DNA of 64,000 bases, from the NCBI GenBank assembly GCA_010909165.1, contig MU008149.1:248001-312000 (forward strand), in the 5' to 3' direction. Both the position numbers and the translations under genes were made by a program. How positions within the stretch are numbered: the first letter of the stretch is position 1; each line of letters starts with the position of its first letter. Shown piece by piece: positions 15,601-55,908 of the stretch. The stretch comes from Anthoceros angustus (lineage: Eukaryota; Plantae; Anthocerotophyta). The notes below the pieces were generated by a model that did no database searches, was not told the origin of the DNA, and saw only the letters and a list, made by a program, of their open reading frames with translations.

Positions 15601-15735
15601 GGGAGCTCAGTTACTCCTCTCCACCTCGACTTCTTGGTCCCCTTTAGTTGTCCCCTCCTGGATGGGCTCTTCCCGTCGCTTTTTCACCTCAATAAGAACT
15701 TTTCCTAGGGATATGCATACCATTACTAAGGAGCC

Positions 15736-15858
15736 ATGCATGTTAGTGAGAGGCTATATATGCTAGTGAGAGGCTATGCATGCTAATGAGAGGCTATGCA
15801 TGCGAATGAGAGGCTATTCATGCGAATGAGAGGCTATGCATGTGAATGAGAGGCTATG
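15736..15858. repeat. 20-bp tandem minisatellite, ~6 copies
   Basis: Unit ATGCATGC(T/G)AATGAGAGGCT read directly. Confidence 0.9.
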
Positions 15859-16215
15859 AAATCCTCCAGCCCGAGAATAATCACCATGCCCGAAGAGGAG
15901 CTGCAAAAATCTCATGCAGAAAATAGAAGCACTAGAGCGGGACGCCATGGGAAAAAACTCGTCGACGAGAGAAGAACTAGGATGGTCACTCTTCACATCT
16001 CGCTCATCCTAATATATTATGTGGGGGCTAAGGTTGAGTCTTCAATCCCTAGATAAGTAGGAGGGTGAACAAAGTGTGGAGAACAACAATTCTGGTTTTT
16101 TTCTCCTACGAGCTTTCTTTTTCTCTTGGCATCCGACTGTAGTGCTTCCATTCTCCGCATTAGATTTGGCAACTCCTCTTCTAGCATGGTGATCATTCTC
16201 GGGCTGGAGGATTCC
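15858..16215. repeat. Imperfect inverted repeat, arms ~150 bp, short spacer
   Basis: The left arm AATCCTCCAGCCCGAGAATAATCACCATG... matches the reverse complement of 16060-16214; the two opposite-strand ORFs both read SSSPR(I/M)ITM(P/L)EEEL. Confidence 0.8.
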
Positions 16216-20355: not shown

Positions 20356-21537
20356 GGAAACGAGGCTGGCTTAAACATGTTGTCTAACCACAGCACCTTC
20401 TCAGATGCCTTACGCCGGAAGTCAGGCGAACGGGAGCTTTGCTTACCTGGTCTGTAGTCTCACCACATGGAAGGGTCCAGAAACAATTGCTGCCACAAGT
20501 ACTCCTGATCCTGGCAACGACCATCGCTGGAAACCCGTCCCACCCTTACAATTTCTCGGAAGTGGAAGTGCTGGGACCCTTACACTGCTGCAGCTGGAGG
20601 CTTTGTTTGCCATCGTATGAGGTGAGCGGGAGCTCCTGGTAGAACACACACCAAGTTGTTGGGTCCACAAGCGGTCCGGTTGCCATACTGTGGCCATAGT
20701 TCAGGGACCGCTGTCGGAAGATGGGCCTAACAACAGACTACGGCAAAATGCCCAGGTACTGTGTTACGTCCACACCAAACGGACGTGGAGAGTACTTTGG
20801 AGGTGCATCATAGGCACATCCACCTGGCTCATACGTGCATGTTGCTCAATTTTTGATCCATCTGGCACCATGGTTTCTTTATGTGTTCGCTAATTTCGAT
20901 TGTTGTGTGTGATGTAGGTTTCTCCCCTATTTTGGAGCGAAGATGGTAGCAAGTTGGGTGCTTGTCAAATACCGTTGGAGCTCTACAAGTTGCCTTGCCT
21001 TGGGAAAAGAAATAGGATAGCTATTATTCAAAGTCTTGGAGATATGGAAGCTTTGGCTGCGGAGCAGGCCCTCCTTTGAAATTTATGATGTACTTGATAA
21101 ATGTGCTGACTCTCATTATATGTATGCATCTATGTCCTAACCCTTGTCCTACTTAGGAGTGCATCTTATTGGCCACTGTTGCGGTACGTAGGACAGCCAT
21201 ATGAGTTGACACTATTTTCCCACCAACGGCAGGACTTACTACAACACCTCCATAGGATTTGGTCCCCATTGACAAACTTACGTCGTGTCAGGAAATCGGC
21301 CGAAGGTGGTGTCTACACTTTCTACAAAATCATGTGTCCCTGGGTCTGTGCTGCTAGAAGTGAATGAGTCAGGTCGTAGCTAGACACACAATCTTATTGT
21401 CAGTGTTACTACATTATCGGCACAAACCAGCACCTAAAATGAACCTGCTTTGCTACCCGATAGGTCCAATTACTGAGTTGATTGCGAAATATCTTTTGAG
21501 GCAAGAAAGTGAGCAGAATAATAGTAGCAAATGGCAG

Positions 21538-21822
21538 CTTGGACAATGGGATTGGACACTTTGCTATGCCACTTGCTTGGACAAGGGGATTGGACACTTT
21601 GCTATGCCACTTGCTTGGACAAGGATTGGACACTTTGCTATGCCATTTGCTTGGACAATGGATTGGACACTTTGCTATGCCATTTGCTTGGACAATGGGA
21701 TTGGACACTTTGCTATGCCATTTGCTTGGACAATGGGATTGGACACTTTGCTATGCCATTTGCTTGGACAATGGGATTGGACACTTTGCTATGCCATTTG
21801 CTTGGACAATGGATTGGACACT
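21538..21822. repeat. 36-38-bp tandem minisatellite, ~7.5 copies
   Basis: Unit GGATTGGACACTTTGCTATGCCATTTGCTTGGACAATG, head to tail with no spacers. Confidence 0.95.
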
Positions 21823-22359
21823 TGCATACCTCCCCTCAGTGTGTTAATCCGCCTCCAATTTTGCTTTCGACATGATTCGATCCAACGATTGTGCTTTTGG
21901 AAGTGCACCAAGGTAGAGAATAGAAGGAGGTCGGCGTATGCAAGACTTTGAAGAAGTTAGTCGCGAGTGCGAATTGACTCCTTCAAAGGTCTAAATGGCC
22001 TACCTAAATATTTTGCGTTCCACTGGGATGTCCTCTCCGTAGCTTTCTTTATTCGAGCCTCCCTAGATCTATTTTTCTCATGATAGGGGTAGAGATGCGG
22101 CACACTATCGATTCTCATGCCCAACGATTAGCTCTGATGAGATTCTACAAGTCACGATCGGTGGAGTAATTGCAGAAGTTAGACGTCCTTTTGCCTCCAC
22201 GTCCCTTCTAGATTGTGAACCTCGTCTCGGCATCTTCATGGAAGTATCGAGCAAGAAAACACGGGCTTTAATACTATGTTCGGGTTTTCGGGAAAGTAAA
22301 TTCATGCAGAAAATATACTCCACTATAAAAAATAATAAATTGAATATCTCGCTTTCAAA

Positions 22360-31582: not shown

Positions 31583-33357
31583 ATGAAGAGAAAGGAAAAA
31601 TGGGCATTGGTATCACTAGTTACTCTTATCTTATCTTTCAACATGTGTAATCTGTTGAATATTTTTAAACTCCATCATAAAGGTACGTGATATATTCAAT
31701 ATGTTTTGGTTAGCTGATTGACCTGAGTGAATTTCAATAATCTCATGTCATCTCTTTAAATTAATATAAATATTTTTTTAATAGTTTCACACAGAGACAG
31801 CCCACTCGTCTCGGTTGTGCGTTACCCAGAATCACATCGACGCCTACTTTTTGCTAAGCTGCAAGATGTTGAAGGTTTGTATTTTGATTGCCAAATTAGA
31901 TAAAAACTTTTGTTAATGAGCTTATAGAATTTTATTGACCTCCAATTTTGATTGCAGATGGACAAGTGTGTCCAAACAGTCTTGTTCTCATCCAGACCGC
32001 GCTAGAGCAAAGCACCAAGGGCTACAGGTACATGGTAAACGTGACTAATCCATGTGCAGACGCAACAGAAACATGTGGGCCTTCACAAGTGATCTTGGGT
32101 TGTGACAATTTGAAGGCGTTAGAAAATCCAAATGGAGATATATCTGCGGTGCCCGGGGAGACAAATCAATGGCTGGTTCATTCAGGGAAGGTCATAGTAC
32201 CGGACTCCGATGTGGTATTCTACTACGTCAGGGATGACAGCTTCCAGAACGACTTTGTGTTTCACAGTGTGAAGCAGTGTGATGCAGGGGGGAATACTAG
32301 TACTCCAGGAACGCCAAGGACACCAGCGGCTCCTCCACCTGAGGACGGATCCCAACCATGGCCATTGGAGCCGCCTAGCAATGGCGGAGCTGGAGGTCCA
32401 CCGGGGAAGGGATTGAAGCCCACACCGCTGCCTCCTCTCGGATCCCCAGCCAGTCCCCCAGGTTCAAGAGGAGGAGGTTCGCCACCACCTCCCATCAAGT
32501 TCTTGCCGCCGTTGATTTCACTGCCTCCGATTGTTGTTCCACCGGTGATGTTCGCACCAGGACAGGATTTTGCTACCCCGCCTGTAGTGTCACCGGCGTT
32601 GCCGCCGTTCCCGCCTCTGCCACCATCGCCACCGGTGGTGATGCCACCAGGACCTGGAGCGCTTCCGCCAGGAGCACGAGAGCTTCATCCGCCTCCAGTG
32701 TTGCCGCCTGGAGTGTCACCGGCGTTGCCGCCGTTCCCGCCTCTGCCGCCATCGCCACCGGTGGTGATGCCACCAGGACCTGGAGCGCTTCCGCCAGGAG
32801 CAGGAGAGCTTCACCCGCCTCCAGTGTTGCCGCCAGGAGGGTCACCGGCGTTGCCGCCATTCCCGCCTCTGCCGCCATCGCCACCGGTGGTGATGCCACC
32901 AGGACCTGGAGCGCTTCCGCCAGGAGCAGGAGAGCTTCACCCGCCTCCAGTGTTGCCGCCAGGAGTGTCACCGGCGTTGCCGCCATTCCCACCTCTGCCG
33001 CCATCGCCACCGGTGGTGATGCCACCAGGACCTGGAGCGCTTCCGCCAGGAGCAGGAGAGCTTCACCCGCCTCCAGTGTTGCCGCCTGGAGTGTCACCGG
33101 CGTTGCCGCCGTTGCCGCCGTTCCCGCCTCTGCCGCCATCGCCACCGGTGGTGATGCCACCAGGACCTGGAGCGCTTTCGCCAGGATCAGGAGAGCTTCA
33201 TCCGCCTACAGTGTCGCCGGCGTCGCCACCCGGAGTGTCACCGGCGCTGCCGCCGTTCCCGCCTCTGCCGGCATCGCCGCCGGTCGTGATGCCACCGGGA
33301 CCTGGAGCGCTCCCCCCAGGAGCAGGAGAGCTTCATCCACCTTCAGTGTCTGCTTAG
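31583..33357 (+). CDS. Secreted TPD1-like Cys-domain protein with Pro-rich repeat tail, join(31583..31682,31785..31874,31958..33357)
   Basis: Hydrophobic leader MKRKEKWALVSLVTLILSFNMC, RRLL motif, domain VCPNSLVLIQ..YMVNVTNPC...CGPSQVILGC...LVHSGKVI...VVFYY...VKQC (TPD1-like Cys spacing), then ~6 copies of a ~41-aa Pro repeat; phase-1 GT-AG introns are consistent. Confidence 0.75.
32570..33350 (+). repeat. Coding tandem repeat, ~123-bp unit, ~6 copies
   Basis: Encodes PPVLPPGVSPALPPFPPLPPSPPVVMPPGPGALPPGAGELH. Confidence 0.95.
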
Positions 33358-46161: not shown

Positions 46162-46350
46162 TGCTCGAAGTAACCCCATTAGGTTAACTTAAGTAAACAT
46201 AGTGTAGTTGTTGCTACGAGCATATATATATATATGGGCTCTTTTATGAATGTCACTGACTCTCGTGAGTTTTGTATATAAACACTTTTCGTTTATTTAA
46301 ACATTCTCTTTTGGGTACATCGTAGTAAGAATACTCTCCGATGTTTTACA
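46162..46350 (+). repeat. Copia 5' LTR
   Basis: Aligns to 52105-52280; followed directly by the PBS. Confidence 0.92.
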
Positions 46351-46362
46351 TGGTATCAGAGC
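46351..46362 (+). promoter_or_regulatory. Primer-binding site for initiator tRNA-Met
   Basis: TGGTATCAGAGC immediately after the LTR's CA end. Confidence 0.93.
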
Positions 46363-49300
46363 AACCAAGTTGCTACTAGATCCTGCTATTCTGCTATGTC
46401 CTATTTAGCATCCAAGATGCATGAAGTGTAAGGGCTCATTGGGCACAGAACCCAATAACCATCACCCTGATGGCTCCTAGGTCATGTGCCCAAGATACCT
46501 TCACCGCCTGCATGAACACATTAGAAATAGGATTTCTAAAACCAGCAGAAATCAACTAAGAACTTCATTTATGCGATTACATTGCAAATTTGGCGGAGAA
46601 CATGCTACTCTATTTTAAAATGATTACGAGGACAATCTAGTGCTCCAAGCATTACCACATCATCGAACATAAGACTTCCATTTTGCACAAGGTGTCAAGG
46701 AGAAGGACTGGAAGGAAGTTCACATACCTTACTTTTCAGCCGTACTCCTAATCTAGTGCATCAAGGAAGGCGTTCTGAGGAGGACTTGAGAGACACTATC
46801 AGACCTCGAGCAACAGGCTTGCTTGAGATTATAGGCGCTTACCGTGTGCTCAACGACATATTGGGCCGCACGGAGAAAGCCCTATTCACGTTTCTGCCCC
46901 TCCAAAATGAGGGCATTTCCGTGAGACACTCTGAGGTTGTGGATGCGCTGGTTTTGTTCTCAAGCGCGCTGGAAGCAATCAAACAATATTTCGCAACTCG
47001 AAATTGATGGGCATTCCCAATTTCAGTGCGCAATCTCTGCCGTGTAACTGCGGCAAACTACGGGCGCTGTCGCGGCACCCGGATCACGAGTCACACACTC
47101 TGCTGTAGAAGGGCGCGGCTCTCAACAGGTGTGCCTTTTTTTTGCTGAATAGGCGCCCGGGAGGCGATCGCGACCTGCGCTGTGGCGTGTCAACGGCACC
47201 CCAACCGTCACCGTTACTTCAACATGCCTGCTGACATCTGAGCGGCATCAACACCTCCCAGATAGCTTCCTAGTTCCAAATCCTGCCCAATTTTGACTCT
47301 CTGCGTGAAAAGAAGTGTGTGTGCACTGGCCTGATCACCCGGCACATGCAACTCAATCACTCAGAAAGTTGAAATGGCATCAGCAGGAGGAGGAGGAGAA
47401 ATCCTTCCTCCCTCTCCATTGTCCTCGCCATCTTACTCCGTTGAATTTAAAGGCGGCCTTCAGCAGTCACAGTTAATTTGTGGCGGCGTGAGGATGTGGC
47501 TGCCTTCAAGCGGACGTTTGAGGGGTTGATGATGGCACCATCAACTGAACACATCATCGCCACACAAGAGGAAAAGGACAAGTGGCGAACCTCAATCACG
47601 TCGCTCTGCCGTTTTGATTAGCGTGGGCGAGATCCCTCTTGCCGATGTGGCTTTCCTTCTCAAAGCCGAAGAAATATGGACAAAACTCCTCTGAGACATA
47701 TGAGGCTAAGAATATCCTCACCATGTGTCTTTGAGAGAGCTCTTTTCTTTACTTGCTCAAAGAAGGAGAAAAGGTTTCACCTTCATCCTCCGTTTCCGAC
47801 AATTGAGAGCTCAACTCATCAACCTTGGTTCTCAATTCCCTGAGTTGGACGCTGTATCTCAGTTGCTCACAAGCTTGCCTCAAAGCTACCAGCCATTCGT
47901 CTCCAGCTATGGTGCTTCCATACGTGCTGCCGACAAGGCGGTCGTGAGCAGGCTCACGCCATCGATCTCCTGGATGTTATTGGGGCCCTGTTGCAAGAGG
48001 AGCAAAGTTGAGTTAATTCCAATCAGCATGGTGGTCGAACTAAGACCGACAAAGTCCTTTACACTAAAGGCAGAAATGACAGAGGTAGACCTACCTCAGG
48101 AGCAGGCCCATCCAAGCCTGGCCCCACTAAACGGACTGGAACATGCAACTAGTGTGGTCTCCAGGGCCATTGGGAAAGGGAATGTAGAAAGAAGAAAGGT
48201 GGACAGCCCCGCAAAACTGAGAAGCCTTCCAGACAGGCTGAAGTTCATGTGGCTACCACAAAAGATCGACCTACCTCGTCGACTTCTAACAAGCACCCTG
48301 TAGTAATGACAGTCTGCTTTGCGTCTTCTTCCATTTCTTCCCCACACACTTGGTACCTAGATTCCGGTGCCACATCTCACATTTGCAATGATAAGTCCTT
48401 GCTTAGCCATTATAGTGCATCTGCCATAGCTAACAAGGTGTTGTTGGGTGATGAGGTCACACGTACAGGACTACGCATCAAGGGATACGGTACACATGGG
48501 TTCCGTCTTCATGATGGCTTCATCCTGCACTTGGATAACGTGTTGCATGTCCCACACATGGCAAAGAACTTGATGTCTGTCGACGATTGATGTCGCCAGT
48601 ATGACCTCCTTTTCCCGTCCGGTGTGAGCTTACTCGAGGAGGAGATAAGCGGTCATAGCCAAGCGGCATTTTAGTTCATGATTTGTATCAACTCAATCTA
48701 ATCGCCTACCTGTGGATGTCGCTCATGTTGCTCACATGTCTCAAGCGGTGAGGCGGTCTTTGGCATGCCCGATTAGGTCATGCTAATCGTGACAAGTTGA
48801 TAAAGATGTCGAACCTCACATGCTATAGAGCCCCGCCTAAGTGTTTCAGGACCTTCCTTTGTGTGATGCCGTCATAGCTAAACAAAAGGAAATTCCTTTC
48901 GAGAACACTTGCTCATCGAGCATCACAGGTCTTGGAGTTAGTCCATGCGGACATATCTCGCAAGATCCACATTCCTAGTCTGGGTGGTGCACAATATTAC
49001 TTAACCCTCACAGACGATTTCAGTAGATACTCCTGGACTTACCCTATAAGGTTGAAGTCCGACACCTTCAGTGTCTTCCAGGAGTGGCTGCCAATGGTAC
49101 AGCGACAGACAGGATGCTTGCTGAAGTGTTTTCGCATGGATAACGGGACAGAGTTCGTCCATGCTCACTTCAACCAGTTATTGCTTGACAGTGGGATCAT
49201 CCGACAGTTGATTGTCCCTTATACTCAGCAGCAAAATGGTGTTGCTGAGAGGAGGAACCAAACCCTGCTGGGAATGACCAGAAGCATGTTAGCATGGTCG

Positions 49301-52104
49301 GTTTGAGCAAGACTTTTAGGCGGGCGGTGGTGGCGCCACTTACATATTGAATCGGATATTGACAAGTGCAGTTGCTGGGCAGACCCCTTTCGAAGTGATA
49401 TGGCGGAGGAAGCCCAGTCTTCTCCATCTCCGAGTCTTCGGCTCTCCAGCTTACGCCTATGTTCCAAAGGAAAAACGTAAGAAACTAGACGACAGGGCGA
49501 GACCGATGCTATTTGTAGGCTATGGGGAAGAAGCAAAGGCTTACAAACTGTATGACACGCTTACCAAAGCTGCTGTCTTTGCTCGGAGTGTGACGTTTAA
49601 GAGCTGCTACCGGCTAAACCGTACTTCCATTCTCGGCCACACGACCAGGAGATTGTTACTCACACAGATATTTCAGATCTTGATGATCCGTTTTCTTTTC
49701 CACAGGATGATGCCCCTCCTGAGTCGACTCAACTCATTGTCGATGGATCCGGATCAACAAGGACGTCCGGTTCACGATCCGAGGCGTCGAGCCCCTGTAG
49801 TAGTTCCTTTGCCTGTTGATGACAACATCCCTGTTCCAGAACCAGATGGTTTGGCTGTTCCTCACAATGAAGATGCTACAGTCGCTGCCGAAGGCTTGCC
49901 ACTGAACCTGAAGATGAGTTTTTAGGCTTTGAGGATTTTGCTCAAGACATTTCAGCTGGGTCTGATCCGGATGACGTTTTTGTATGGGCCCCAGTTCAGG
50001 ACGCTCCTCCTGTGGTTCCTGATGAGCCAGTGTTAGATCCAGAGCCTCGATATCCTCGACGCACAAGGCTGCCTCCTTCTCTGGTAGAACCACCATACAC
50101 CTATTCGACTTGGCCAGTCACGTGCAGGTGTATCCACTCGGGGATCTGTCACCTCTTATTGCCACCAGTTCTCCTTTTATGAAGCCAGAGCCTCGCTCAT
50201 ATGTTGAGGCCACTACAGGAGCTGATAAGGATCACTGGATCCCTTCCATCAAGGACGAGTACGACTCCCTGATCAAGAATGATACATGGGAGTTGTGTCC
50301 ACGCGGCGACCAGGTCGGCCCAAGTGGGTTTTCAAGCAAACGCATAAATGGTGACATAGCTTTATTATAAGTCCTGCCTTGTAGCAGCGGTTTTTCTCAA
50401 GTTCACAGAGTTGACTTGAGACTCGCCCCGCTGCCAAGACATACCGATTAGGATGATTCTTGCTCGGCATGCAACGATGGGATTTGCAACAAATGGATGT
50501 ATGCACCGCACGTATGGGGCTGGAGGAGGACATATATATGCAGCCCTGAGGGTTTCGTTGACCACAGGCATCCAGGCTGGGTGCCGCCTCAAGAAGACCA
50601 TTTATGGCCTTAAGCAATCTGCTAGGGAATGGTATAAGACTATTGATAAATACCTCAAGTCACTTGGTTTCCAACAGAACCCAGGTGATGCTAACGTCTA
50701 TTTATATTCCAAGGATGGACGGATTGTAGTGCTGGCCCTCTACGTCGACGATGCCATCCTCGCGTCAAACGATCCTTCATTGTTAGCCTGGGTCAAGCAG
50801 ATGTTGCACCAGAGGTTTGACATGAAGGACATAGGGCCCCTTACCTTTGTTCTCGGAGTCCAGCTCGTTAGGGACCTTGCCTCTCACACCATTCTGCGCA
50901 TCAGCCAATAAATATTTTGAACTCTTCGCTGCTTTCGATTGACAAAGCCAAACTGTCTCCCTGTGTTACTGCGCTGTTATCTGCACTGCCTCGTGACCTC
51001 GATTGAAGATGGGCAGCTGTGCCATGTCTCAAGTCCCTTATCGCCATGCTGGTTAATTACATAAGTTGTTGGACTACATATCCAGATTACTCTTGTCAAT
51101 CTTGTTTCTCGGTTCTTGACAACCTGGCAGAGAGGGAGAACAACGAGTGTGCGTGTTACGCTTATTTGAAGGGTACTCAAGATTACGGCTTATGCTTGGG
51201 GCAATCAAATGAGCATACCATTTACGGATTTGCACGCCGTGCAGACTCTATCGGACCCGGATGCTCAAGAAGCATTTGACTTATTGCTTCACCACGCCAA
51301 ATGCACCACCGGAGCTCGAAGAAAGCAGTTGGTGTGGCTCGTCCTCTAGGCGCAAAGCATAGCGAAGCGGCCAAGGAAATTTGCACGGAAGCGTTGTTTC
51401 ATGCAAGGTTTTGGATTTGCCCAGTCTCAGCCAACCCCTATCCACTGTGATAACATGTCCACCACCAACCACCCACGTTTCCACGTCCTGAAGCACATAG
51501 AAGTGCACCATCACTTTATTAGGCATTCTGTAGAACAGAAGCAAGTCTACATTCAGTATGTTTCCACAGATGAAAATATCGCAGATTTGCTTACCAAGTA
51601 CTTGCCTACGCACAAGCACATGCTGCACATGGAAGCCATGGGTGTGAAGGACTGTCGGCTACATCACAGGTAGCTGCATAGGTCACCTAAGTTGCAGGCA
51701 TGGCGGATGAAGCTTCATCGAGGACACAATCGCCGCCGCTAGCCTATGGTTTCAATTGATCACTACTAGCAGATCTGCAATTTGCATACTTGAGCACTTC
51801 GGCCCACCACCAAAGTTACCCGGTTGCCCGTCAATCCTCCCGGTGGCGACGAGCCAAAGTGCACTCCCAGGTTTGCAATGCCACCGCTGCTCTGCAAAAG
51901 TTCGTTCCAGCTGTAGTTATGTTTCGTGGCTCGAGCTCAAGTTTCGTGCGTCTTCTCGCCTCCTTTGTTCTCGCGGAGGTGCCGTCTGAGAGGAACACTA
52001 CAGCGATCACAAAGGCAGTAGACTCGTGCAATCGGATTAGCAGACTTGCCATGGTTTTTCAGAAATCACGTTGCCGCTAACAAGCTGCTCTGTTTATGGG
52101 GGCG

Positions 52105-52280
52105 TGTTCTAAGTAACTTCATTAGGTTAACTTCTTAAGTAAATAGCGCTTGTTGCTAAGGGCTATATATATATATATGGGTTTTTAAATCATGACTCGT
52201 GAGTTTTGTATATAAACACTTTCATTTATTTAAACATTAATCTTTGGGTACATCGTAAGAATATTCTCCGATGTTTTACA
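52105..52280 (+). repeat. Copia 3' LTR
   Basis: Preceded by polypurine GGGGGCG; ends GATGTTTTACA like the 5' LTR. Confidence 0.92.
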
Positions 52281-52851
52281 ATTGTCCTGTTTTTGTTTTG
52301 TTGCTTCATGTAGGGCATGCCACACTCCCTCGAGCACTCACACTATGTGAGACCACCACGAGAATGAGCAGGGGTCTGTTGGCCTATTTTTCAATGATTC
52401 ACGAGCTTCACTCTTTCATTTTTTAAGGCGTGTAATGAATCTAAAAACATCAGCCCCTCATGCAACGACGAGCTTTCCAATGGCATGCGTATTGCATGTC
52501 AACTTCATGCACCACAAAGGCATCTCGCATCGAGAATTGTGAGATGAAATGTGGCGAACCACCTAAAGACATTGAATTATCCACATGTTTTGCACAATTT
52601 ACCTCAAAGAGGTAACACCATAATTTCTAAAGGGGAATATAGTCACCCCTTTGGTCAACACCCTTGACACATTTTACACCCTTCCTACGATAGCGGATCG
52701 CTAAGCTATGATAATGGGCACACCCTTTGGGAGTCCATACCTTGGATGAAAGACGACTTTCAATTCTATACCCAGTAGAAACCTTTGTAGGCGCGGGCCC
52801 ATCTCGCATTTTTGTAGAAAGCACGGTGGGCTGCCATTTTCATCTGTTAAA

Positions 52852-53043
52852 GAGCTTGTCGACGACATCTTCGTCCCCAGGCTCGCAAAAGTCGGCGTGG
52901 TGTGTCGCGTAGCCTTGAACTCCATCGTCCCGGAGCTGCATCAGTCGACCGGCCCACAAACCCGCGAGCACGTTGCGGCGGGCAAGGACGTTGTCACGCG
53001 TGTCGGTGTCTATGCACGAGTCGGTCCCGGTGGAGGATGCGGT
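52852..53043 (-). pseudogene. Fragment resembling alphaproteobacterial DUF1476 / F1Fo-ATPase inhibitor zeta subunit
   Basis: VLARRNVLAGLWAGRLMQLRDDGVQGYATHHADFCEPGDEDVVDKL matches the zeta pattern ARRNxLxGxWA...D...YA...DFxEPGDEDVxxKL; ~64% GC by hand count and CpG-rich against AT-richer flanks; N at 53044. Confidence 0.7.
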
Positions 53044-54592
53044 NCAAGGCCTCATTTGATCGCAAGCGAAGAGGAAAATTGGAAAAATGGAAAGTGCTTG
53101 CATATGGACTTCAAGTACGAATGGAACAATTTCTTGCAATAAGCAATTTACCTAAGCCAAGTCCTTCATATGACAATAACTGGATCAACATCGACATTAT
53201 GTGAAAGAAATACGAAATTGGATGGATAGATCAAATGTTATTGCACAAGACGATGTCCCACAAAATGTTGCCCCACAAGAAACTACAATAAAAGAAGGAG
53301 TATAAAATCAAGATTTATGTGAAAACAATGTCGACCACACTCCAAAATTTTATGATAGGAAGCCTGGATATAAAAACCCCAATCATATTGAAGGATGCCC
53401 TACGGCATATGTTGAAAGTTATGCGAAAATTCTAATACAAGGGTCCCATCACCTAGTTCCGTGTTGGATCCAATCATGGTCAAGAGTATCCTCCAAAGGG
53501 AGCACAATATTCATCGAATCAGACATAGTGCCATGAAGTGTTTCCATGCATTTAGGAAGAGTTGACCACCAAACCACACAAACGTGACATCCGGTTTTTT
53601 TGCCAAAGAGATGGCGCAGGAGATCCAAGCCTGTGGCCGCAACGCCACACTTGGTTCAAGGAACATGCGCACCCATCGACCTTCAAGACTTGAGTCAATC
53701 AAGAAGAAGGAGAAAGATGGCAAAAAGGTCCGATAACCCTAAGAACATGGGGAAAGAAGAGCTAAGACCAAGAAAGCGACCCTACTTGGGACAACCAACA
53801 TCCGGAGACGCTTTGGCGAGTCCCAAGGTGGAGAAACGCCATATCTTCCTCTTGCTATTTACGATCCGCAACGGCCGCAAGAGAACGATGACATCGCCCC
53901 GAGGAAAAGACAACATTCGCCAAACTAGCTAGAAACATAGACCATGTCAACTGTTGGAGATCAAAATGTGAGTGCGCGCACAAGTTTGTGCACAAATAGC
54001 ATGGCTACCAAGGAAAAGTCGATCGAATGTCTCGATGGTTTTCTCGTAATTCGATGTAATGTCCCATATCGTATCGCACTAAAAAATTGAAATGTTTGCG
54101 GGTGACTGTCATGGGAGAAATACAAAAAAGGTGATTCCAAGCATGGATTTCCGCCGGGGTATCCGGAACGTCCAGAAGCAAAAAGGGGGTTTGGAGAACC
54201 CTTTAGAATGTGACCGTTAATGGTGTGCAAACAGATGGACGGCCCCAGGATCATGGCCGATCACCCGGAAGTGCATGCTTTGTAATGACCGCGTATGACA
54301 CATATCTATTTCACACGCTTATCCACGATGCATGTACCGTTGCAATTTAGGTACCAAGGGTGACGCATTACCCAAACGCGCCTCGGTCACCGGGATTGTC
54401 TTTTTGGTCCATGATGAGTCAATGCATGTCATGGTCCTTGGATTGGGAAATGCCCATGTCCGCAGTGTCATTTGTCCTTCCGCCATGACATGTACATGCA
54501 TGACATGGTCCACGACATCGATGATTTGGGCCATGACATGTATATGCATGTCATGGGCTTGACCATGGCATGCATTTACATGTCATGGCCGA

Positions 54593-55908
54593 ACATATAT
54601 AGTCACGAATATCTCGCCACATAGCGACGGCCAAGCATTATTCCGGCATTTCGAGGGCCAAGGACAAATGCGACCTCATTGCACAAGGATTTATTTGTCC
54701 TTGGGCCTCGACATCGTGCATGTCATGGCTCCCATGGTCTTGTCATGTCCTTGGCCCATGACGCATATACATGTCATGGGCCAAGGACATGATATGACCA
54801 TGACATGCATATGCATGTGATGGTCCAAGGAAACATTTTTCCTTTGACCATGAAAATGTATATGCATGTAAATGTCAGCGCATGACATTTATATAATAGG
54901 CATGGGCCAAGGACATTTATATAATTGCCATGGGCCAAGGACAAATTTGTCCTTGGGCCATGACATGTATATTAGGCTTCATGGGCAAGGACAACTTTGT
55001 CCTTGGCCCATGGCAATGCATGGCATGGTCAAGACCAGGACATGAACCGCCATTTCGTGGGCCAAGGACACATTTGTCCCACCAAACTGCATGCATGGCA
55101 TGGTGGCCCAGACATAAATTTTCATGCCAATAAGGACAAATTGTCCTCGCCCAGACATGTAATTCATGTCATGGGCGAAGGACAAATTTGTCCTTGGCCG
55201 GAAAGGCCATATTGGTGTCTATATATGATATGTGAGTGTGGTGTAGACTTCATTTGGGAGGACATGCTATTATGAGGACTTAAAACACAAGGAGCGCATG
55301 ATGAGGTGGCCAAACATGCATGGGGATGGGCCTAGTTGTCATGGGCCAAGGACAACTTTGAGCTTGGCCCATGACATGTAAATGCATGGCATGGTCTTAA
55401 CCATGACATGACATGCCATGGGCCAAGGACAAAGTTGTGCTTGGCACATGACATGCATATGGATGTCATGGGCCAAGGAAAACTTTGTCGCCCATGATGC
55501 ATGCATGTCGTGCGCAGACATGCATATATATACATATGACATGACATATATACATGCCATGGGCCAAGGACAAAGTTGTCTGGCCCATGACATGATATGG
55601 GGCCAAGGACTTTGTCCCATGGCATGTATATGTATGAACATATGACATGTATATACGACATGGTCCAATGAAAATGTTTCCTTGGACCATGTCATGTACA
55701 AGTCATGGTCATGTCATGTCCGTGGGCCATGACATGTATATGCATGTTATGGGCGAGACATGACATGACCATGGGCCATGACATGGACGATGTCGAGGCC
55801 CAAGGACAAATAGTTCCTTGGGCAATGACAAGCTGGCATATGTCCTGGCCCTCGAAATGACCGTGAATGTTCTTGGTCAAATGTGTAGAATTTGGTGACT
55901 ATATATGT
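54593..55908. mobile_element. Foldback/MITE-like element, 1.3 kb, long inverted arms and internal CATG palindromes
   Basis: ACATATATAGTCAC (54593) vs GTGACTATATATGT (55895-55908); arms of at least ~280 bp align as reverse complements (CATTTCGAGGGCCA, ATTTGTCCTTGGGCCTCGACATCGT, GGTCCAAGGAAACATTTT); the interior repeats CATGGGCCAAGGACAAATTTGTCCTTGGCCCATG-type 34-bp palindromes. Confidence 0.85.

Follow-up and report, generated by a model that had tools for sequence, protein, structure and literature searches.

The window analysed here, that is, the whole stretch of 64,000 nt of DNA from the hornwort Anthoceros angustus, contains 195 nt of bacterial-type sequence (52849-53043, minus strand). This sequence is an internal fragment of a bacterial gene for the ATP synthase zeta subunit (DUF1476). 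In all likelihood, it does not belong to the plant genome and is instead the trace of a chimeric plant–bacterium long read that survived at the end of a contig. The absence of any mismatch to bacterial DNA, the position of the window's only N, the contigs of a plant-holding sequencing run that depart from the window, and the lack of a contig bridging the junctions together favour an artefact. The fragment encodes nothing functional, and the open reading frame (ORF) that runs across it is accidental. The original prediction had left the choice between a recent capture and an assembly artefact, flagging the latter as a real possibility. The evidence now favours the artefact, on the grounds of the zero mismatches, the run contigs and the position of the N, and the capture is without positive support.

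The edges of the bacterial stretch were defined by DNA alignment to bacterial contigs. The fragment had originally been placed at 52852-53044; its existence was confirmed, but its left edge lies 3 nt further out, at 52849, and its right edge at 53043. Translation of the window on the minus strand from 53043 to 52843 gives the peptide TASSTGTDSCIDTDTRDNVLARRNVLAGLWAGRLMQLRDDGVQGYATHHADFCEPGDEDVVDKLFNR, which comprises 67 amino acids and is followed by a stop. In a Pfam profile search, this peptide matches PF07345 (ATPaseInh_sub_z, formerly DUF1476) with 31.8 bits and covers positions 20-72 of the 102 positions of the profile, the gathering cut-off of the family being 25 bits. Comparison with the sequences of solved structures also identifies zeta subunits (7vkv and 2ll0/5dn6), with E values of about 1e-5, and a search of the fragment against NCBIfam models gave no match. 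The earlier assignment to the alphaproteobacterial DUF1476/zeta family was therefore correct, as both the profile score and the DNA match to bacterial contigs indicate. The score places the 67-aa fragment within PF07345 (31.8 against 25 bits), and the fragment falls short of a complete domain of about 100 aa with a start and a stop of its own.

Relative to the complete bacterial gene, the fragment corresponds to codons 14-80 of 114 minus two codons, codons 1-13 and 81-114 being absent. It holds only nucleotides 40-240 of the gene and has neither a start codon nor the native stop. The sole difference from the bacterial gene is the absence of AACCGC (plus strand; two codons, Ala-Val) between 52902 and 52903. 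The stop codon that closes the reading frame belongs to the plant side. There, the bases at 52840-52848 (minus strand) add Asn-Arg-stop by chance, so that the window reads NR and a stop where the bacterial gene reads GDLTRCG and continues. A functional chimeric ORF (52840-53139, 99 aa) was considered and rejected: its TTG start lies in repeat DNA, it passes through the N, and it contains only an internal part of the domain. Because the N-terminal segment of the protein lies outside the fragment, no inhibitor function is possible from it.

The description of the locus as a GC-rich and CpG-rich island within AT-richer, CpG-poor DNA was also upheld. The fragment has a GC content of 62.6% and 25 CpG dinucleotides, with an observed/expected (o/e) CpG ratio of 1.31, compared with 44% GC and a ratio of 0.70 in the left flank and 38% GC and 0.61 in the right flank. 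The values for the whole window are 48.6% GC and 0.69, the published GC content of the genome being 49.6% (PMC7027989). Segments of 195 nt that are equally loaded with CpG account for 0.6% of those in the whole window. The window contains about 15 GC-rich and CpG-rich islands, and composition alone is insufficient to single out the fragment. The ORFs of two of the other islands (35.5-36.4 kb and 56.1-57.0 kb) were compared with Pfam in search of further bacterial pieces, and no match was obtained.

Several other features were noted in the window. Tandem arrays are located at 32452-33351 (126-nt units), 21499-21847 (38-nt units), and 15724-15863 (20-nt units), the first of them lying inside an ORF of 469 amino acids (31948-33357). 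Degenerate repeats, some direct and some inverted, are clustered at 54300-55850, with arms at 54986-55079 and 55350-55443 (80%) and at 54905-54966 and 55790-55851 (73%); the region carries ORFs rich in His, Met, Trp, and Cys on both strands. An ORF of 110 amino acids at 53600-53929 shows a sub-threshold match to DUF3736 (19.6 bits, cut-off 22.6), which is probably due to chance.

The bacterial source of the fragment can be described at both the protein and the DNA level. A protein search with the peptide yielded 47 PF07345 proteins with lengths of 83-114 aa, the best of which shows 96% identity, and public DUF1476 proteins of 114 aa match the peptide at 96-97%, well above what chance would give. 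All 47 homologues carry PF07345 alone and have bacterial length, and the few that are named are bacterial. A scan of bacterial species genomes found three loci. Two of them, L003:3040-3240 and L004:3040-3240, both on contigs of Hyphomicrobiales genomes, align to 52849-53043 with 0 mismatches and a single 6-bp gap; the third, L002, and the Logan contig L001 show 2 mismatches and the same 6-bp gap. Divergence from the donor and amelioration towards the host, the marks of horizontal transfer, are thus not seen: there are 0 substitutions over 195 nt relative to L003 and L004, and GC and CpG content are unlike those of the window.

The three loci are filed under different names. The 118-kb contig L003 carries the label Aquamicrobium terrae DSM 27865, L004 belongs to a metagenome bin from an algal culture recorded as Hyphomicrobium sp., and the label of L002 is Afipia sp. 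Identity is 99.2% over 6.3 kb between L003 and L004 and 97% between L002 and L003. To judge from these identities, the three are closely related, and their labels are inconsistent with one another. The full bacterial protein (P0048, 114 aa) matches PF07345 with 64.5 bits, the profile match beginning at position 20. In bacteria, the complete DUF1476 gene stands between the genes for a TerC membrane protein and a DUF533 protein, in the order Usp, TerC, DUF1476, DUF533, and pyruvate kinase. The exact bacterial protein occurs on 115 contigs (NCBI, JGI, ENA, and Logan) labelled as Hyphomicrobiales or Aquamicrobium, and a near-identical variant is found under Enhydrobacter and Roseitalea. The labels attached to pieces of the neighbouring TerC gene include Bradyrhizobium and Burkholderia, and such pieces are also present as contigs of 247-264 nt in assemblies filed as Escherichia coli and Vibrio parahaemolyticus. 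The same bacterial locus is encountered under the names Afipia, Aquamicrobium, Hyphomicrobium, E. coli, V. parahaemolyticus, and Burkholderia, which suggests that the public records of the L002/L003/L004 locus include mislabelled or contaminant contigs.

A similar breadth is apparent among sequencing runs. In 23 runs, about 8% of the sampled words of the searched stretch are present, a share close to the size of the bacterial piece; for three of the 23, contig alignment confirmed that this share represents the bacterial piece. The sources of these runs are sediment, freshwater, activated-sludge, bioreactor, and biofilm metagenomes, together with several coded organisms. The donor is a widespread water or soil bacterium and a frequent by-catch in the sequencing of other organisms.

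The right edge of the fragment leads directly to the question of how the assembly was built. The sole N of the window lies at 53044, and the bacterial homology stops one base before it, at 53043; the adjacency of the N to the fragment had been reported correctly. A lone n is what the scaffolder SSPACE ordinarily inserts where its gap estimate is non-positive and no overlap is found. A search of the literature on this way of writing gaps produced nothing usable. In the published work, the raw reads of A. angustus separated into one group from the plant and another, large one from bacteria, and bacterial micro-colonies were described on the surface of the gametophyte and in its intercellular spaces (PMC7027989). 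Filtering, correction, and decontamination reduced the Illumina data from 126.5 to 17.1 Gb and the Nanopore data from 63.6 to 3.78 Gb (PMC7027989). For the assembly itself, wtdbg was run on the cleaned Nanopore reads and Pilon was used for polishing; a MEGABLAST screen led to the removal of 29 Mb of prokaryotic or organellar contigs, and SSPACE scaffolded the contigs by means of Illumina pairs, the scaffold total exceeding the contig total by about 210 kb (PMC7027989). Since this pipeline first builds Nanopore contigs and then joins them with SSPACE, Ns are expected only at scaffold joins. From this we infer that the single N at 53044 is a join of two contigs, on which reading the foreign piece lies at a contig end (53043/53044).

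The DNA on both sides of the fragment is of plant type. The left flank (52281-52848) is AT-richer DNA of low to moderate copy number, with k-mer depths of 2-64 in the run X1 described below. It stands beside a degenerate Ty1/copia retrotransposon (46162-52280, plus strand), which is recognisable by rve, SH3_retrovirus, and RVT_2 domains on ORFs split between reading frames and by an LTR-like pair with 81% identity (46162-46350 and 52105-52280). The right flank (53045-53520) is a high-copy plant repeat with a depth of 250-500 in X1 and would be the start of the next contig. The window's copy would open 14 nt or more into the repeat, where the contig starts. Comparison with sister copies of the repeat that lack the insert had been suggested along with the original prediction; no empty copies of the flanks are present within the window, where the only match is the 190-nt LTR-like match of the copia element. 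A search for Nanopore adapter remnants around both junctions gave scores no higher than those of shuffled controls, which is a weak negative. The 74-aa ORF across the left junction (52701-52925, minus strand) had no exact counterpart on record, and no chimeric protein ending in DKLFNR was present among the homologue matches or in the 90% cluster.

Contigs from four runs (X1, X2, X3, and X21) were compared with the window over 51500-54500. The three unrelated runs X2, X3, and X21 each provide one contig (1874, 2527, and 400 nt, respectively) that matches 52849-53043 with 0 mismatches, inserts AACCGC behind 52902, and continues at both ends with sequence that is identical among them and absent from the window; on both sides, these continuations read as bacterial sequence. 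A substantial share (0.29 of the words) of a 1.3-kb stretch including the plant flanks is present in X1 alone. This run was available as contigs rather than raw reads, covers 29% of the words, and may differ from the source sample, so that a gap between its contigs is weak evidence.

In X1, the bacterial stretch is represented by no more than two contigs, each with a depth of 2.6. The first spans 52849-52902 and extends for 197 nt past 52849; the second spans 52876-53043, with the 6 bp present, and extends for 311 nt past 53043. In both cases, the extension is unlike the window. The mean X1 depth of the bin 52813-52913 (2.37) is wholly explained by the contribution of these two contigs. Consequently, no X1 contig lies on 52813-52848 and none bridges 52848/52849. 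X1 contigs bridging 53043/53045 were also sought, and none was found. Most simply, the X1 contigs that leave the window at both junctions would be part of the bacterium's own genome, the run-on sequence being in that case bacterial.

The plant repeat to the right of the N is well represented in the same run. A 411-nt X1 contig over 53084-53493 shows 1 mismatch to the right flank. In six X1 contigs that extend as far as 53045 from the right, the sequence to the left of this position is AATTTTAATGAGAT. These 14 nt are not bacterial; 9 of the 14 positions match the left flank of the window, an agreement too weak to decide whether the two flanks once abutted. Over the approximately 1 kb covered, the window differs from X1 contigs by at least 12 small indels, of 1-2 nt and several of them in homopolymers, versus 7 substitutions. 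This indel-heavy pattern in the region 52300-54500 looks like the noise of an incompletely polished long-read consensus in repeat DNA.

These observations can be combined into a plausible sequence of events for an assembly chimera. The stub would derive from a bacterium present in the sequenced sample and would have been attached to the end of a plant long-read contig, either through a chimeric plant–bacterium Nanopore read or as an erroneous contig tail supported by a single read. An origin of the chimera at the read or consensus level is the form that the pipeline and the data suggest. The assembly graph would have broken at the high-copy repeat, and the chimeric tail could have survived there. 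Decontamination, in which whole reads and contigs were screened, may have passed over the stub owing to its short length. SSPACE would then have used read pairs to link the contig to the next one and, as the foreign tail left no overlap to be found, would have written one N; the foreign overhang of 195 nt would explain why the two contigs were not merged. The 6-bp gap may itself be a long-read consensus error, which would point to a long-read origin of the stub.

The same facts must be weighed against a real and very recent integration into the nucleus. According to this explanation, 195 bp of DNA from a member of the Hyphomicrobiales were inserted as filler when a double-strand break at a repeat edge was repaired, the donor living in the intercellular spaces of the hornwort, and the 6 bp were lost at that time or later; the adjoining contig break would be due solely to the start of the high-copy repeat. 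Some of the evidence lends itself to such a scenario. None of the bacterial copies seen shares the AACCGC deletion, which could be genuine, and the high-copy right flank could have ended a contig at 53043 even with a real insert, which weakens the argument from the N. The last 14 nt of the left flank agree at 9 of 14 positions with the sequence that precedes 53045 in other copies of the repeat, an agreement that fits a foreign overhang equally well. Since the gametophyte harboured bacteria in its intercellular spaces and on its surface, donor DNA would have been physically near (PMC7027989). Against an integration stand the massive contamination of the sample (PMC7027989), the zero substitutions relative to living strains, the coincidence of the fragment end with the N, and the lack of any junction-bridging contig or called protein among the X1 contigs and the protein records. 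The same stretch is, moreover, present in the plant-holding run X1 on contigs that depart from the window at both junctions. Contaminant chimeras are common in draft genomes, and a non-T-DNA bacterial insertion into plant nuclear DNA with no difference from its donor would, to our knowledge, be exceptional. A recent integration thus has a low prior and no positive support, and it is considered unlikely.

The fragment might also be the edge of a larger genuine bacterial insertion whose interior was lost through decontamination. Reads and contigs matching prokaryotes were indeed discarded, which could break an assembly inside such an insert (PMC7027989). Bacterial sequence is, however, found on one side of the N only, the right contig opening directly in the plant repeat, and the X1 run-on contigs leave the window at both junctions, unlike an insert with plant DNA on either side. 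Furthermore, the gap was written as one N and given no size, which suggests, given the usual behaviour of SSPACE, that no missing sequence was estimated. A larger insertion is therefore regarded as very improbable. An old DUF1476 gene resident in the plant since an ancient transfer, a piece of which was taken up by a transposon, would suit the transposon-rich region. It is scarcely credible in view of undecayed CpGs and of homologues that have bacterial length and no domain other than PF07345 in 47 of 47 cases, and the identity of the DNA to present-day bacterial genomes is incompatible with an old copy. The same identity led to the rejection of mitochondria or an ancient plant sequence as the source of the fragment.

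With an assembly chimera as the preferred explanation, the fragment has little biological weight, as it is non-functional and most likely lies outside the plant genome. Its significance lies in quality control. Hornwort genomes are mined for bacterial transfers, and most of the reads from this sample were bacterial. Short foreign stubs that are fused to plant repeats at contig ends pass screens of whole contigs and may be misread as transfers. In the light of this case, the ends of contigs and the sequence next to Ns should be screened at the sub-kilobase scale before transfers are called, and the locus itself is a candidate for trimming or masking in the assembly. The case also illustrates that one widespread bacterium of the Hyphomicrobiales stands under many inconsistent names in public records.

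In comparison with known systems, the closest characterised protein is the zeta subunit, an inhibitor of the F1Fo-ATPase in Paracoccus denitrificans and its relatives (PF07345; PDB 2LL0, 5DN6, and 7VKV), which belongs to the same Pfam family as both the fragment (31.8 bits) and its bacterial source (64.5 bits) and aligns with them over the motifs ARRN...W and DF.EPGDEDV. In contrast to the Paracoccus protein, the fragment retains only profile positions 20-72 of 102, and the source is a 114-aa Hyphomicrobiales variant. Compared by eye, the first residues of the source protein are unlike the N-terminal segment that blocks F1 rotation in Paracoccus zeta, and the source is a putative inhibitor at most. 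As an assembly feature, the locus resembles the contaminant chimeras of draft eukaryotic genomes, of which the disputed tardigrade assemblies with claimed horizontal gene transfer are reportedly an example. The likeness consists in a short, microbe-identical stretch at a contig end in heavily contaminated data; the difference is that here 195 nt are fused within a plant contig and escaped the screening of whole contigs, rather than forming an entire contaminant contig. The genes reported as transferred from bacteria to hornworts are likewise bacterial-type sequence in a hornwort assembly (PMC7027989), but the present sequence differs from them in being an internal fragment with zero divergence beside an N. 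By analogy, the situation therefore appears to match contaminant chimeras in draft genomes and not genuine gene transfers to hornworts.
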